From the sequence record NC_041972.1: a stretch of DNA of 64,000 nt, one strand, 5' to 3'. The position numbers and the translations under genes were made by a program. The notes below the pieces were generated by a model. That model was not told the origin of the DNA and did not search any database. It saw only the letters and a program-made list of their open reading frames with translations. Below, one piece after another: positions 13,809 through 64,000 of this stretch. Positions within the stretch are counted from its first letter, which is position 1, and every line of letters starts with the position of its first letter.

Positions 13809-13825
13809 TCTTAGACCTACATTAT
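13809..13825 (+). promoter_or_regulatory. Candidate phage early promoter TCTTAGACCTACATTAT
   Basis: Identical 17-mer at 54037-54053 and a 12-mer core at 63922-63933; each lies in a gap right after a core-gene block. Confidence 0.55.
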
Positions 13826-13858
13826 AAAAAGGATATGATTTAATAAAAGGAGTTCCCG

Positions 13859-14575
13859 ATGTATGGTCTATTGATCTTAGCACTACCCCAGTCACCGTAT
13901 GTCCACATGAGTGCGATGACTGCGGACAGGTTTACTGAACTGCTCCCACAGTTCCAGAAAGAGCTCGATGCAGATATCTTTCCCAACGTCTGTTTCCAAG
14001 GCGCGTTTAACGTCAGCAACACTCGTACTGTAACGCCCTTATTCATTCCGTGTAGTGGTTTGGTATCGGCACGGGAGTTGGGTTACGAACAGATCCGTAA
14101 TATTCTTGCTAACCCAGAGAAAGAGATCCAGCACGTCACCAACATCGGTGATTGGTTAGGTCGTCCGGGTAAGGTGATGTTCGATAATGCGGATGGATCT
14201 GTGGATGAGGGCGTTGTGACCGATATGTACAAATATCTGGTACATGAGAGAAGAGAGCGTTCTGTCTTTCGGTTCAGTCCTGTTGATCTCAGTATCACCG
14301 ATACCGAACCATTGCCAACTCACCTCTACCCGCGTGATCATTTCTACGACCAGGTCTACATCGACAAAGACGGTGAGCGTGCTTTCCTGTCTTACGGGTC
14401 GTGCGGTGAAGAAGGCTGTGCCATAGAGCCAGGCGAAGAGAAACCCGTGCAAGTGTACGGCGTTACCTACTCATCACTGGATGAAGCGGCCCGTTGCTAT
14501 AACCTGCCTGAGCAGTACGTGAAAGAACGCGTTGAGTCTGACAGCCTTGAATGGCTGGAGTGGTCATATTTGTAA
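13859..14575 (+). CDS. Degenerate GIY-YIG-like protein with C-terminal NUMOD/HTH-like DNA-binding domain (paralog 1)
   Basis: YGLLIL..YVHMS..FPNVCFQGAFN..TNIGDW N-domain; PVQVYGVTYSSLDEAARCYNL C-domain. Confidence 0.65.
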   Translation: MYGLLILALPQSPYVHMSAMTADRFTELLPQFQKELDADIFPNVCFQGAFNVSNTRTVTPLFIPCSGLVSARELGYEQIRNILANPEKEIQHVTNIGDWLGRPGKVMFDNADGSVDEGVVTDMYKYLVHERRERSVFRFSPVDLSITDTEPLPTHLYPRDHFYDQVYIDKDGERAFLSYGSCGEEGCAIEPGEEKPVQVYGVTYSSLDEAARCYNLPEQYVKERVESDSLEWLEWSYL

Positions 14576-14703: not shown

Positions 14704-14901
14704 ATGACCACAAACCCGCAGTTTATTTTCGTGGCTCAGAATTCTGATGCTACACACAGCGTAGAGAAACTGGAAGTAGGACGCGATACCGATACCCAGA
14801 AGAACCTCACGGAACTTCGTAAAGGTTTGCCGTTCGACTTCTCGTTTATCATGTCTGAAGAGGCGATCTATCAACTTCGACAGGCAGGGCACATCAACTA
14901 A
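14704..14901 (+). CDS. Small hypothetical protein (65 aa)
   Basis: ORF in operon context; weak RBS. Confidence 0.55.
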   Translation: MTTNPQFIFVAQNSDATHSVEKLEVGRDTDTQKNLTELRKGLPFDFSFIMSEEAIYQLRQAGHIN

Positions 14902-14916
14902 ACTGCTGAGGTAGTC

Positions 14917-15369
14917 ATGACGAACAAATCGGAGATCTCACACGGTGGTGGCGATCAGCCTATGGAAAAAGAGCAAAGCAACTTATCCGTACTGGTGAAC
15001 TACTCCACAGGTGTGATGGAAGGTGACCGTTTTAATTACTCGGTTGCATTGGCGCTGTTGAAAGACGGCATCAAAGTGAAACGCGAAGACTGGAAGAACG
15101 CTTTCCTGGTGTTCGTCCCGGGTAGTCAGAATGTTGAACTGCCAAAAGGGTCGCCGTATGAAGTCGCACTCCACGGTAAGAAGTCCGTTGCCAATATTCG
15201 TCCGCACATCGATCTGTACACGGAGTACGGTGAATTCGAAGTCGGTTGGACAGCCAACCAGGAAGACACTAACGCCGATGACTGGATGATTGTCTTAGAC
15301 AAGAACACCAATCAAGACGACAGTGCCGACGAAGAGAAAGAGTCCTCAAACGACGACTCGAAGTCATAA
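14917..15369 (+). CDS. DUF2829-family protein (Tad2-like anti-defence sponge candidate)
   Basis: F..ALALLKDGIKVKREDWKNAFLVFVPGS...PHIDL..E.G...W.ANQED..ADDW.IV pattern; GAGGT RBS. Confidence 0.8.
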   Translation: MTNKSEISHGGGDQPMEKEQSNLSVLVNYSTGVMEGDRFNYSVALALLKDGIKVKREDWKNAFLVFVPGSQNVELPKGSPYEVALHGKKSVANIRPHIDLYTEYGEFEVGWTANQEDTNADDWMIVLDKNTNQDDSADEEKESSNDDSKS

Positions 15370-15374
15370 ACCCC

Positions 15375-15403
15375 AGGAGAGCTTCGGCTCTCCTTTTATG
15401 CCC
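15375..15403 (+). terminator. Hairpin plus TTATGCC
   Basis: aggagagc-ttcg-gctctcct-tttatgccc. Confidence 0.75.
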
Positions 15404-15785: not shown

Positions 15786-16154
15786 GTGATGAAACCACTC
15801 TTCGCCATGAAGTTTGATACCCGGGATGCGGGATTAGGGGATCAGCTCGATCTCTTGCAATCACGGGTTAAGGCTTATTCTAAACACGGCACCATGATCA
15901 AGGATGTAGCGGTGACGGCCTGGGTGGTCTGTTCGGATAACATGCCGGTTGCCGGTGATGACCCTGCTCATGTCAGCATTATCCACCGTTACCGTTACGA
16001 CATCGAACAACAGTGTGTGGTCGGTGGGGTCAGTGCCATGGATGCTCTGCGTGAGATCTGGTCGGCGTATGGTCCTGACTCTACCCTCCCGCCGTTCAGC
16101 CGGATACCCGGTGCTGTCGATATGCAATTTACCTTAACTGTGTTCACTATTTAA
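15786..16154 (+). CDS. T-[AK]-W family paralog 2
   Basis: DVAVTAWVVCSDNMPVAGDD; AAGGA RBS. Confidence 0.75.
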   Translation: MMKPLFAMKFDTRDAGLGDQLDLLQSRVKAYSKHGTMIKDVAVTAWVVCSDNMPVAGDDPAHVSIIHRYRYDIEQQCVVGGVSAMDALREIWSAYGPDSTLPPFSRIPGAVDMQFTLTVFTI

Positions 16155-18124: not shown

Positions 18125-18907
18125 ATGGCTATGACGTTCGAAAAAGAAGGGGACACGTTGCACATTGTGCGACTGAGAACCAAGGGCTGGTACCACATGA
18201 CGGTAACCAGCGATCCTGATGCGAGTATGGATATCGTTAACACGAACTTACGTCAGGGCACTTTTACTGATCCACTTTTACAACACCAGTACGACATCTG
18301 TAAAAAAGAGATGGGGCAAGATCCCAATCCAAATGACATCGTTTTCCACCAGTTCGTGACCACGCCAGACCAGACCGGGTATCAGTCTGGCCACTGGATG
18401 ATTCGTGATCACATTCGCCACGGCTATTCACTGAAGTGCCTGACTAACATCGGTGACTGGCTTTCGACCGCAGCCTATCTTTATATCCCAGACCCTGATG
18501 ATAAAGAGGGCGGTGAGAGAAAATACAAAGTAACTGACTTAGGTAAGTATCTCGACAAGGAAGAGTTATTGGGTCATTCTGACCACCTGCCGATGTATTT
18601 CTTGCCTGATGAGGAACCGGGTGACAGCTATGATGAGTTGATTGAAACCCATCGTCTTCCGCAACCTGACAAAGGTTACTCTTGTGTGGCCATCAAGAAC
18701 GGTATGTCGTTTAGTTTGCTGACGTACAACAACTCCAAGCGGGTGCTTTCAGAAGAGGAAGAACTGCAAACCACAACCGTCCCAGTCAGGGCAGATGGTT
18801 TGCTGTACAGCTCCGTCTTAGAGTTGGCTATGGCTAAGAACGCCCCAGTCTGGTTTGTCTTGGAGATGCTAACCTCCGAAACCGACCCAAACTGGCATTT
18901 CGTCTAA
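18125..18907 (+). CDS. Degenerate GIY-YIG-like protein with C-terminal HTH-like domain (paralog 2)
   Basis: TLHIVRLRTKGWYHMT..LRQGTFTDPLLQHQYD..LTNIGDWL; C-terminal VPVRADGLLYSSVLELA..PNWHFV. Confidence 0.65.
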   Translation: MAMTFEKEGDTLHIVRLRTKGWYHMTVTSDPDASMDIVNTNLRQGTFTDPLLQHQYDICKKEMGQDPNPNDIVFHQFVTTPDQTGYQSGHWMIRDHIRHGYSLKCLTNIGDWLSTAAYLYIPDPDDKEGGERKYKVTDLGKYLDKEELLGHSDHLPMYFLPDEEPGDSYDELIETHRLPQPDKGYSCVAIKNGMSFSLLTYNNSKRVLSEEEELQTTTVPVRADGLLYSSVLELAMAKNAPVWFVLEMLTSETDPNWHFV

Positions 18908-18995: not shown

Positions 18996-20576
18996 GTGAG
19001 TGAAGCTAACCAGAACATCGTAGAAAGCTACGACGACCTGCCGAAGAACGCGCAGAAAGGTGATCGCTATACCGTGCGTGAAGACGCGATCGTTTACGAA
19101 CTCCAGGAAGATGGTTCTTGGAAAGACGTAGACATCAACGAACAGGTTGATCAGGAAAACGAAGAGCAGGCGCAGACCGAAGATGGTCAGCAGTCTGACA
19201 CCGGCGCAACTGATCAGCCAGCCTCTGATGAAGAGAGCGATGCTGATTCGTCTGAAACGGCAGCTACCGATGAAGAAGACCAGGTAGATGACAACGGCGA
19301 TGACAAGCAGACTCCGGCTGAAGAGAAGCAGGAAGAAGCAGCGCAGGCGGTTGATGAAACCCAACCACGTGATGACCCTTACGTACGAGGAGCGAACAGC
19401 GATGCCAATCCGGCACAACCTGAAGATGCGAATCAAACGCAAGATCAGACTGACGAAGCAGGACAAACTCCTGATTCTTCTGACGATACCAACGCGCAGC
19501 AGGAAAGCACTGATGGCGTTGCGACGCAGGATGCGAAAGAGCAGGCTAACATCCCGGAAGGGGTAGATCCTGAAGAAGCGCAACCTGACAACCAGCCACT
19601 GGCGGTAGCGCCGGTTGAACAACCCCCTGTCCAGCACGAAGCGGTCGCGGTTGATCCTAACGCCGACCAACCATCACCTGAAGCGCGTCCAGACAGCAAG
19701 ATCGAAGAAGCAGCTGAACTGAACGCACAGAAAGAAGATGCGGCTCGTGATGAGATCGCTGAAGCCGGTGCCGATGCACAAGCTGCGACCTCTGCTGAGC
19801 AGACTGACGCTGGCAAAGCCAAAGAAGACGCACAGGCTGAAGGCCAGTTGCCGAACGATGGTGCTGCTGATGATGTCGCCGCTGGTAAACCACGTAATGA
19901 CCAGACCTACACCGAAGATCAGAAAGCGGCGAACACGCCAGCGCCTGAAATCGTGCAGGCTCAGGAAAACCATACGTCAGAGCCAGACCCGGTAGTCAGC
20001 CAGGAAGAGATCCATGTGCAGAACGCCACGGACCCTGACCAGCCGACTATTATCCCGCAGGAAGCGAAGTCTGAATCACTGGCGCATCAAGCGGCTGATC
20101 CAACGCAGGAAACTGTGTTTGTTAAGCAGGATGAAAACCTGGACCCGGAAGTGCGTGTGCTGCAACAGCGCATTGAAGAGTACATCGGCAACATGGGTGT
20201 GAACGGTAAGCACGATCGCCGTGACGGTCCGAAGTATCAGGCTCGCCTGTACAAAGACCTGCACTCCATCATGGCGCTGGAGCCAGTGAAGTTCAAGCAA
20301 GTGATGGACTACCTGCTGAACCGTGTGTATGAAGAACGTGCCGGTGCTTTCTCCGACACCTATACGCGCCGTTACTTCGATCAGCTGTCACCGATGCACA
20401 TGCAGACCGATCGCGTGCGTGAGTTTGACAACATCCTGTCGCTGGTAACTACTGTGGGTCATTCCAAAAACCGCAGTCGTGCCCTGCAGCAGGTTGATCT
20501 GCAACGCGCCCTGAAGAACATTCAGGATGCCGGTAAGCAGCAGCGTATGGCAGCGTACTTTGATGCTCTGCGTTAA
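18996..20576 (+). CDS. Acidic low-complexity protein with N-terminal fibre-like module and folded C-terminal domain
   Basis: About 330 aa of D/E/Q/A/P-rich sequence, then an ordinary-composition domain of about 150 aa; AGGAG RBS. Confidence 0.8.
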   Translation: MSEANQNIVESYDDLPKNAQKGDRYTVREDAIVYELQEDGSWKDVDINEQVDQENEEQAQTEDGQQSDTGATDQPASDEESDADSSETAATDEEDQVDDNGDDKQTPAEEKQEEAAQAVDETQPRDDPYVRGANSDANPAQPEDANQTQDQTDEAGQTPDSSDDTNAQQESTDGVATQDAKEQANIPEGVDPEEAQPDNQPLAVAPVEQPPVQHEAVAVDPNADQPSPEARPDSKIEEAAELNAQKEDAARDEIAEAGADAQAATSAEQTDAGKAKEDAQAEGQLPNDGAADDVAAGKPRNDQTYTEDQKAANTPAPEIVQAQENHTSEPDPVVSQEEIHVQNATDPDQPTIIPQEAKSESLAHQAADPTQETVFVKQDENLDPEVRVLQQRIEEYIGNMGVNGKHDRRDGPKYQARLYKDLHSIMALEPVKFKQVMDYLLNRVYEERAGAFSDTYTRRYFDQLSPMHMQTDRVREFDNILSLVTTVGHSKNRSRALQQVDLQRALKNIQDAGKQQRMAAYFDALR

Positions 20577-54036: not shown

Positions 54037-54053
54037 TCTTAGACCTACATTAT
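54037..54053 (+). promoter_or_regulatory. Candidate phage early promoter (second copy)
   Basis: Identical to 13809-13825. Confidence 0.55.
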
Positions 54054-54086
54054 CGAGATGATCCAATAAATTATAAGGACTTCACC

Positions 54087-63906: not shown

Positions 63907-63921
63907 ATCTGAAAGAATTAC

Positions 63922-63933
63922 AGACCTACATTA
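63922..63933 (+). promoter_or_regulatory. Candidate early promoter core AGACCTACATTA (third copy)
   Basis: Matches 13813-13824 and 54041-54052; lies just after a terminator. Confidence 0.5.
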
Positions 63934-64000
63934 CTAACTAGATGTAACAGCGACGCTAGTGTTTAGTTGAAGCCTTACATCTATGTGGAGTTAGGCGCGT

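Follow-up and report, generated by a model that had tools for sequence, protein, structure and literature searches.

gp279 of Erwinia phage vB_EamM_Deimos-Minion, a divergent short-lid member of the Tad2 family in a jumbo phage

Nucleus-forming jumbo phages evade DNA-targeting defences and stay exposed to cytoplasmic signalling immunity. A candidate for a protein that captures immune signals is encoded by gp279 of Erwinia phage vB_EamM_Deimos-Minion (NC_041972, genus Agricanvirus, 273.5 kb). The gene lies in the last 64 kb of the genome, to which the whole stretch of DNA analysed here (the window) is 100% identical. A sequence-only reading of the window had proposed that gp279 is an early-expressed anti-defence gene encoding a DUF2829/Tad2-like sponge of signalling molecules, with counter-defence genes around it. 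Its premise that the phage forms a nucleus is reasonable, since RAY, a member of the same genus, has been shown experimentally to build one (PMC10299810). The gene and the parts of its product are as follows (aa, amino acids; nt, nucleotides; pLDDT, predicted local distance difference test).

14917..15369, + strand: gp279 coding sequence, 150 aa, ATG start, stop included; Tad2-like, PF11195; YP_009605422; 'hypothetical protein' in GenBank
14908..14911, + strand: GAGG, Shine-Dalgarno-like motif 5 nt upstream of the gp279 ATG, read directly from the sequence
14917..15030, + strand: N-terminal arm, aa 1-38, mildly acidic, with a low-confidence helix at aa 20-30 (pLDDT about 50-65)
15031..15297, + strand: Tad2-like core, aa 39-127, with helix alpha1, an antiparallel beta-sheet and the C-terminal pocket helix, as delimited by AlphaFold2 pLDDT and Foldseek
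15298..15366, + strand: acidic low-complexity C-terminal tail, aa 128-150 (block-mean pLDDT 55-69)

That gp279 belongs to the Tad2 family can be regarded as practically certain. Residues 40-126 match the Pfam family PF11195 'Tad2-like' (formerly DUF2829) over profile positions 2-73 of 73, with an E value of 4.6e-14 and a score of 53.2 bits where the cut-off is 25, which is far beyond chance, and PHROG families 1048 (E 2e-47) and 872 are matched as well. A phmmer search of the PDB sequences found SptTad2 (1e-5), ModTad2 (3e-5) and, weakly, SPO1 Tad2, and a profile built from gp279 and 70 IMG/VR relatives found all solved Tad2/AcrIIA7 proteins at 1e-22 to 1e-30. An AlphaFold2 model based on the same alignment (mean pLDDT 81, with block means of 92-97 for aa 41-120) contains a helix at residues 41-49, six short strands and a helix at residues 115-119, and shows the arrangement by which the Tad2 fold is defined, namely an N-terminal helix, an antiparallel five-stranded sheet and a C-terminal helix between the last strands. 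When this model was compared with the PDB by Foldseek, the 24 hits at E<=0.001 were all Tad2 chains, among them 8wjd, 9eib, 8v3e, 8wje, 8kbj and 8smf, and the hit ranked after these 24 had an E value of 0.16; the other significant Foldseek hits were viral Tad2-like models.

An unbiased, exhaustive HMMER search yielded 151 sequences (gp279, the representative P0002 and the next 149 representatives), in which six positions are near-invariant: the Arg before the lid, the two ligand-stacking Trp residues, the pocket Asp and a C-terminal D-W pair. Their equivalents occur in 148-151 of the 151 sequences each, and all six (R56, W59, W111, D117, D122 and W123) are present in gp279. Thus, the family assignment of the sequence-only reading is upheld by both the Pfam search and the predicted fold, and its 'complete DUF2829 pattern' holds for these six residues, although the commonest motif of the family, GWNGKG, is replaced in gp279 by DW-KNA with a two-residue deletion. 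The extra acidic arms that it had described are also real, with a net charge of -3 in the N-terminal arm and -6 in the C-terminal tail, the whole protein having -13 and a pI of 4.5. The novelty of the assignment itself is modest, as it is already public and derivable from databases: DUF2829 was noted for the Ea35-70 ortholog in its 2014 GenBank record, and the Simmy50 ortholog is listed in UniProt as a 'Thoeris anti-defense 2-like domain-containing protein'. No paper discussing gp279 or its orthologs was found in the literature, and what is added here is the reshaped pocket, the invariant N-terminal arm, the proteomic detection and the jumbo-phage context.

The residues that bind ligands in this family are known from several solved proteins, onto which the pocket of gp279 was mapped through HMMER alignments. 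SPO1 Tad2 (Gp34.65; 8sme/8smf/8smg) is the founding Thoeris anti-defence 2 sponge and binds 1''-3' and 1''-2' glyco-cyclic ADP-ribose (gcADPR); in its complex with 1''-3' gcADPR, W25 and W73 make van der Waals contacts, N26 and D79 make polar contacts, and T78 touches the adenine (10.1101/2023.05.01.538930). The gcADPR site of HgmTad2 comprises W21, N22, G23, W87, L88, S90, T92 and D93, and binding is lost in the mutants W21A/N22A and S90A/T92A/D93A (10.1101/2023.11.15.567273). The main ligand contacts, W25/W73/D79 in SPO1 Tad2 and W21/W87/D93 in HgmTad2, are all kept in gp279 as W59, W111 and D117, and T102 and L100 are the homologues of SPO1 T65 and I63. Two segments of the pocket are changed.

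15088..15102, + strand: lid loop, aa 58-62, shortened from the canonical 'GWNGKGM' to 'DWKNA' in the alignments; position 60 is K, N or S within the clade
15244..15285, + strand: pocket helix region, aa 110-123, 'GWTANQEDTNADDW'; W111, Q115, D117, A120, D122 and W123 kept, positions 112-114, 116, 118-119 and 121 variable in the clade

In the lid between beta1 and beta2, gp279 reads R-E-D-W-K-N-A-F and the canonical sequence R-x-G-W-N-G-K-G-M-F, so that two residues are deleted and the Gly before the lid Trp has become Asp (position 58). All five solved Tad2/AcrIIA7 proteins carry a GWNGK[GN] lid, from which gp279 departs; in the canonical gcADPR-binding type, the Asn and Gly of this lid bind the diphosphate of the ligand from both protomers. 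In the helix, the canonical W-L-A-S-Q-T-D is W-T-A-N-Q-E-D in gp279; the Trp, Gln and Asp are kept, and the Ser and Thr that contact water and adenine are replaced by Asn and Glu. For gcADPR, the pocket foreseen by the sequence-only reading is therefore only partly preserved, with both Trp residues and the Asp in place, the lid Asn/Gly deleted and the adenine-contacting Thr changed to Glu. Given the two-residue lid deletion and the WTANQED helix, gp279 probably does not bind a ligand in the canonical way.

The short lid is not peculiar to this phage. The Agricanvirus-type clade forms one 50%-identity cluster, represented by P0002 (86% identical to gp279), and the next relative beyond it shows 51% identity (E 2e-14). 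Among the 151 sequences, the lid has the canonical length in 117 and is shorter in 29, 16 of them as short as in gp279, with examples such as W-KN-AY, W-KG-AF and W-TT-MW; about one-fifth of the 150 nearest relatives thus have a short lid. A changed helix motif, typically W-x-P-[TNS]-Q, accompanies 28 of the 29 short lids vs 48 of the 122 others (Fisher 6e-9, uncorrected for phylogeny). By these alignments gp279 belongs to a recurrent minority form in which lid and helix change together and the Trp/Asp scaffold stays, and this co-variation makes the pocket look reshaped rather than decayed. An earlier view that the short lid is unique to the gp279 clade, based on canonical lids in 69 of 69 IMG/VR relatives, was rejected in the light of the unbiased search; the 69/69 result was biased because G-x-K-[VI]-x-R-x-[GD]-W-[NK] had been a requirement of the pattern with which IMG/VR was scanned. 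Within the clade (six sequences), 20 of 127 positions vary, and 8 of these 20 lie in the lid and pocket-helix segment (60, 112-114, 116, 118, 119 and 121), an enrichment with a Fisher p of 3e-4 for a segment defined post hoc; among the homologues of published contact residues, 4 of 12 vary (p 0.10).

Functional data on other members bear on what a short lid permits. Hadary et al. (10.1101/2025.08.24.671296, Table S2) give a 'y' to Tad2_79 (lid KWSKDVV) against type I and IV Thoeris and to Tad2_72 (lid AWPKNVF) in the type I validation column, the meaning of the 'n, N/A, y' cells being our interpretation. Both lids resemble the DWKNAF of gp279, the proteins themselves being distant in sequence and devoid of an N-terminal arm or acidic tail. 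By analogy with these two homologs, a short lid seems compatible with sponge activity.

The gene is also under strong purifying selection. The protein is identical over 150/150 residues in Deimos-Minion, RAY, Ea35-70, Desertfox and Mortimer, and the codon differences over the ten pairs of these five isolates comprise 26 synonymous and 0 non-synonymous changes. The sole non-isolate relative of the Agricanvirus Tad2-like clade is encoded on a 287-kb metagenomic contig (IMGVR_UViG_3300013104_000001; L003 / L011), to whose protein gp279 is 85% identical. Of the 12 neighbouring genes compared with this contig, gp279 ranks first; the RNA polymerase (RNAP) subunit gp276 reaches 77%, gp280-282 reach 39-53%, and gp283 has no match. 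The order of gp275-276, gp278-279, the paralog array and gp284-287 is kept on this contig, from which gp277 and gp283 are missing. The RAY ortholog, gp273, was detected by liquid chromatography-tandem mass spectrometry of crude RAY lysate with 18.7% coverage (Sharma et al. 2019, PMC6690015, Table 3). A protein of the gp279 type is therefore made, and crude lysate cannot tell whether it is packaged.

The two extensions behave differently from each other. Only 4 of the 38 positions of the N-terminal arm vary across six members of the clade that are 80-99% identical overall, and this near-invariance in sequence argues for more than a linker role. The C-terminal tail varies freely in length and sequence (it differs in P0002-P0004, AH06 and L011). 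No prohead-protease-type cleavage motif was seen in the arm on inspection by eye. A weak similarity links its 'SVLVNYSTG' to the 'GYLVEYSDG' segment of two-domain relatives, and the arm may, on this sequence resemblance, be a remnant of their N-terminal domain. Such Tad2-like proteins with an N-terminal domain of about 75 aa and the motif DEGYLVEY-DGG...GYISWSPK-VF--AY occur at the IMG/VR loci L013, L016, L021, L023, L024, L027, L040, L046, L053, L077 and L083; in the two scanned (L023 and L016), no Pfam model was found for this domain.

The reading favoured here is that gp279 is a signal sponge of some specificity, with a probability of roughly 0.55. By analogy with the solved Tad2 proteins, it would most likely assemble into a homotetramer; helix alpha1, through which Tad2 tetramers form, shows good conservation (YSVALALLKDG vs FGEALEALKKG), which is suggestive of a tetramer at most. 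Two pockets would lie between non-dimeric protomers, each built from the stacked W59 and W111, D117, the C-terminal helix and the beta1-beta2 lid, and could capture an immune signal derived from a nucleotide while it is in the cytoplasm of the host, thereby keeping an abortive-infection effector from ever being switched on. For a phage that shields its DNA in a nucleus, such a cytoplasmic sponge would be fitting. The ligand may be a TIR-type signal derived from ADP-ribose (ADPR), for which the specificity of the pocket would be altered, or one that has yet to be discovered. A precedent for altered specificity is provided by ModTad2/MoTad2 (9eib, 8v3e), which binds His-ADPR, the signal of type II Thoeris, and cyclic UMP (cUMP), the signal of Pycsar, and not gcADPR, and which does not block type I Thoeris; in this family small pocket changes switch specificity (10.1101/2025.08.24.671296; 10.1101/2024.01.03.573942). 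Its identity to gp279 over the aligned Foldseek region (30-33%) is the highest among solved Tad2 proteins, and its helix likewise departs from WLASQTD (WTPSVSD), whereas its lid is the canonical GWNGKG and terminal arms are absent from it.

Several observations weigh against this reading. The phosphate-binding lid residues (N22/G23 of HgmTad2, N26 of SPO1 Tad2) are deleted in gp279, and W21A/N22A abolishes binding by HgmTad2; the adenine-contacting Thr (T92 of HgmTad2, T78 of SPO1 Tad2) is Glu. The non-canonical homologs Tad2 69, 75, 78 and 80 inhibited none of 7 systems tested (10.1101/2025.08.24.671296), and for 19 of 84 sponges tested no known system was inhibited (10.1101/2025.08.24.671296; 10.1101/2024.01.03.573942). 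AcrIIA7, a protein of the Tad2 fold, acts by binding RNA and not a small molecule (PMC13133391). When 317 E. amylovora genomes and 227 Erwinia phages were surveyed with DefenseFinder, restriction-modification, type I-E CRISPR, toxin-antitoxin and many rare systems were reported in the host (PMC13480210). Thoeris is never mentioned in that survey, yet gp279 is perfectly conserved; CBASS-I and Pycsar are mentioned only briefly and are thus probably rare; and the anti-defence genes listed for the phages include acb1, NARP1, dam and others, with no tad2. A canonical Tad2 target is therefore not evident in the known host despite the tight constraint on gp279, a combination that favours an altered or unknown ligand, a different role, or natural hosts beyond the known one (Pantoea, E. 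billingiae).

The best surviving alternative, which is possible although doubtful, is that gp279 is a canonical sponge against type I Thoeris, binding 3'cADPR/2'cADPR (gcADPR) like SPO1 Tad2. Apart from the conserved stacking and polar contacts W59, W111 and D117, along with T102 and L100, it can draw on the positive marks of the non-canonical-lid Tad2_79 and Tad2_72 for type I Thoeris and on the prediction by Li et al. of a functional gcADPR site in about 99% of short Tad2 proteins. SPO1 Tad2 belongs to the same Pfam family and shares the predicted fold (Foldseek E 1e-5 to 1e-6, target-normalised TM score 0.7-0.8), its beta2-beta5 insertion is of similar length (24 aa vs about 29 in gp279), and its W25, W73, D79 and T65 correspond to W59, W111, D117 and T102. 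On the other hand, the two proteins are only about 25% identical, the lid 'GWNGKN' has become 'DWKN' with the loss of N26, and S76, T78, D67 and H71 of SPO1 Tad2 are Asn, Glu, Tyr and Glu; SPO1 Tad2 has 89 aa, and gp279 carries in addition the 38-aa N-terminal arm and the 23-aa acidic tail. The lid deletion that removes the phosphate-binding Asn/Gly, the replacement of S90 and T92 by Asn and Glu, the absence of any type I Thoeris inhibition by ModTad2 (canonical lid, changed helix) and the lack of reported Thoeris in the E. amylovora pangenome survey (PMC13480210) all tell against gcADPR. Judged by its sequence, gp279 falls outside the canonical gcADPR-binding type by its lid and part of its helix motif.

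Scarcely behind in probability, and likewise tentative, is the possibility that the Tad2 fold has been put to a different job, with gp279 binding RNA or a protein, or acting as an accessory protein that enters with the virion or is related to the nucleus and whose N-terminal arm contacts another protein. The model for this is pdAcrIIA7 (9kzr; PMC13133391), which forms a tetramer of the Tad2 fold, carries a head domain at its N terminus and holds tracrRNA in a basic surface groove that depends on K58, K66 and K71; its head of about 48 aa modulates activity (PMC13133391) and, like the 38-aa arm of gp279, precedes the Tad2 core. The near-invariance of that arm, unlike a mere linker, the detection of the protein in a crude lysate dominated by virion proteins, the position of the gene beside a virion-RNAP subunit gene, and the perfect conservation although matching host defences appear rare would all be in keeping with such a job. 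Nevertheless, pdAcrIIA7 has a basic groove and the canonical GWNGKG lid, whereas gp279 is acidic (net charge -13, pI 4.5), and of the essential Lys residues K58 is kept (K49), K66 is reversed in charge (E57) and K71 (K60) is Asn or Ser in clade relatives; moreover, the hosts of gp279-type phages carry type I CRISPR, not Cas9. The acidity and these Lys positions lean against an RNA-binding role, and the arm may bind a protein. This explanation also has no need of the invariant ligand-stacking Trp and Asp residues, and crude lysate is no proof of packaging.

A bolder version of the sponge reading is speculative and rather improbable: the short-lid Tad2 subfamily may bind an immune signal that no known sponge captures, such as a new TIR- or cyclase-derived molecule of an Erwinia/Pantoea defence, and the N-terminal arm may direct gp279 into the virion for delivery with the DNA, like Tad1 of phiKZ. 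The two cases are alike in that phiKZ Tad1 is a signal sponge of a nucleus-forming jumbo phage, in which the DNA is shielded and cytoplasmic signalling is neutralised, but Tad1 has an unrelated fold and family and is reportedly injected with the DNA.

Still less probable is a sponge for a non-ADPR signal, either cyclic dinucleotides (CBASS) or cUMP/cyclic CMP (Pycsar), held in an intra-dimer pocket as in HgmTad2/MoTad2. HgmTad2 and SptTad2 (8kbi-8kbm, 8wjd), which bind gcADPR as well, bind cGG and cGAMP, MoTad2 binds cUMP at the intra-dimer interface, and SptTad2 is the best match of gp279 among solved proteins in both sequence (phmmer 1e-5) and structure (Foldseek 2e-7). CBASS-I and Pycsar are the signalling systems listed by the E. 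amylovora survey, though probably rare there (PMC13480210). Dinucleotide binding, however, needs a beta2-beta5 insertion of 35-41 aa with R31, S47, F70 and N85, and gp279 lacks the long insertion domain of HgmTad2 (about 29 vs 41 aa); R31, N85 and F70 correspond to V67, V109 and I94, and S47 has no equivalent. The cyclic-dinucleotide pocket of HgmTad2 is thus absent, which weakens the appeal of the sequence-only reading to Tad2 proteins that bind cyclic dinucleotides; on its sequence gp279 falls outside the dinucleotide-binding type, and binding of that kind is highly improbable.

Finally, it is hardly likely that gp279 descends from a two-domain DUF2829 protein and is now decaying or without function. 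Its Pfam score is low (53 bits vs 71-94 in the four typical, longer relatives scored), its lid is deleted and its arm looks like a piece of the N-terminal domain that longer relatives carry, but 0 non-synonymous vs 26 synonymous differences effectively refute the idea; 85% identity in a distant relative vs 39-77% for neighbours, detection by mass spectrometry and a folded core of high confidence also tell against it.

In gp279, a chimallivirus has a divergent short-lid member of the Tad2 family. According to a 2026 review, no anti-defence protein of jumbo phages other than Tad1 of phiKZ has been described so far (PMC13282480). If the sponge reading is true, gp279-type Tad2 would be a second sponge family in jumbo phages, and one in the Agricanvirus/RAY model system. 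The reshaped pocket may serve as a useful probe of the signals used by Erwinia and Pantoea hosts. Sponges have repeatedly been used as bait for discovering new signals, and, if gp279 binds a novel ligand, the purified protein could serve as bait for that molecule and its defence system. Agricanvirus-type phages are also candidates for the biocontrol of fire blight, for which host-range determinants are of practical value.

The timing of expression and the surroundings of the gene were considered next to its function. The features involved are listed below.

14704..14901, + strand: gp278, 65 aa, partner gene upstream of gp279 with a 15-nt gap; PHROG 11788, function unknown
15375..15394, + strand: 8-bp GC-rich hairpin with a UUCG loop, terminator-like, just after the gp279 stop (dG -14.2 kcal/mol, z -4.0, 0/200 shuffles as stable)
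15396..15402, + strand: TTATGCC within TTTATGCCCATTA, promoter-like, containing TATG, 17 nt before the gp280 start; TTTATGCCCATTA is invariant in five genomes
5660, 20622, 21738 (- strand), 22843 (- strand), 29237 (- strand)/29280 (+ strand), 57234, 58182 (- strand), 63108 and 63899: other sites of the hairpin plus TTATGCC module

Early expression, as the sequence-only reading had it, found no support. No recognisable early promoter was found: no conserved promoter-like element occurs upstream of gp278/gp279 (the gap before the gp278 homolog of AH06 is only 26 nt), k-mer enrichment gave no early-promoter-like motif upstream of these genes, and a sigma-70 promoter scan gave 6 sites vs 10.4 in shuffles, a result that carries no information here because the phage encodes RNAPs itself. 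Moreover, gp279 lies just downstream of gp276, the counterpart of RAY gp270, a virion-RNAP subunit that localises with capsids (Prichard et al., PMC10299810), and virion-RNAP genes are middle genes in phiKZ (PMC4666361).

The hairpin behind gp279 is kept in RAY, Mortimer, AH06 and the 287-kb metagenomic relative, in which several paired substitutions maintain the stem and the loop is GAAA instead of UUCG. TTATGCC occurs at 17 sites in the window vs 6.4 expected (0/100 shuffles reach 17), 11 of them directly after a strong hairpin, and ATG/GTG triplets lie within tens of bases downstream. In phiKZ, late promoters have the consensus TATG, and the G is the first transcribed base (PMC4666361). By this analogy, gp279 may end a transcription unit and gp280-283 begin a new one of the late type. 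A module that combines a strong GC-rich hairpin (-14 to -28 kcal/mol) with TTATGCC at a distance of 1-5 nt behind it recurs between genes, and these modules are candidate units of a terminator and a promoter of the non-virion RNAP in Agricanvirus. Another motif, TTAGACCTACATTA (core AGACCTACATTA), is found three times (13810-13826, 54038-54054 and 63919-63935), always intergenic; its copies at 13813 and 54041 lie upstream of a + strand gene, and it is a candidate for a second promoter class.

The adjacency of gp278 and gp279 is kept in every relative examined, and the pair is conserved in AH06 (80% identity) and on the 287-kb contig (85%). A feature search of the ESM Atlas with gp278 returned a weak T5orf172/GIY-YIG-like lead, with a score of 0.88, below the useful threshold. 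The gene could encode a nuclease remnant or a partner of gp279.

The proposal that the neighbours are counter-defence genes is unsupported. For the neighbours within gp277-gp287, no Pfam match above cut-off, no NCBIfam model and no PHROG family of known function was found, and an ESM Atlas search gave nothing usable. The pairs gp280/281 and gp282/283 are diverged paralogs, set apart from gp279 by the conserved terminator-like hairpin and the TATG-type promoter-like motif that follows it. One of them, gp281 (15789-16154), is hypervariable among five isolates that are otherwise nearly identical, with 16.6% nucleotide divergence per site and 196 non-synonymous and 234 synonymous codon differences over the ten pairs; divergence in the genes on either side is 0.3-5%. 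Within the gp280-283 array, one paralog thus seems to have undergone recombination or diversifying selection, a pattern compatible with a host-interaction gene while proving nothing.

The array and the Tad2-like gene are bracketed by gp277 (13859-14575) and gp286 (18125-18907), paralogs with 26% identity over 227 aa that both belong to PHROG 6749 and share an NIGDWL motif; gp277 is missing at this place in the 287-kb relative. The resemblance of their C-terminus to the I-TevI DNA-binding domain is below threshold (E 0.0045 for gp277), and both genes may be derived from homing endonucleases. Further downstream, gp287 (18996-20576) encodes a protein of 526 aa with a long acidic low-complexity N-terminal half, which is among the top-ranked proteins in the published lysate proteomics (retrieval rank 6 for RAY gp281 and rank 61 for Deimos-Minion gp287).

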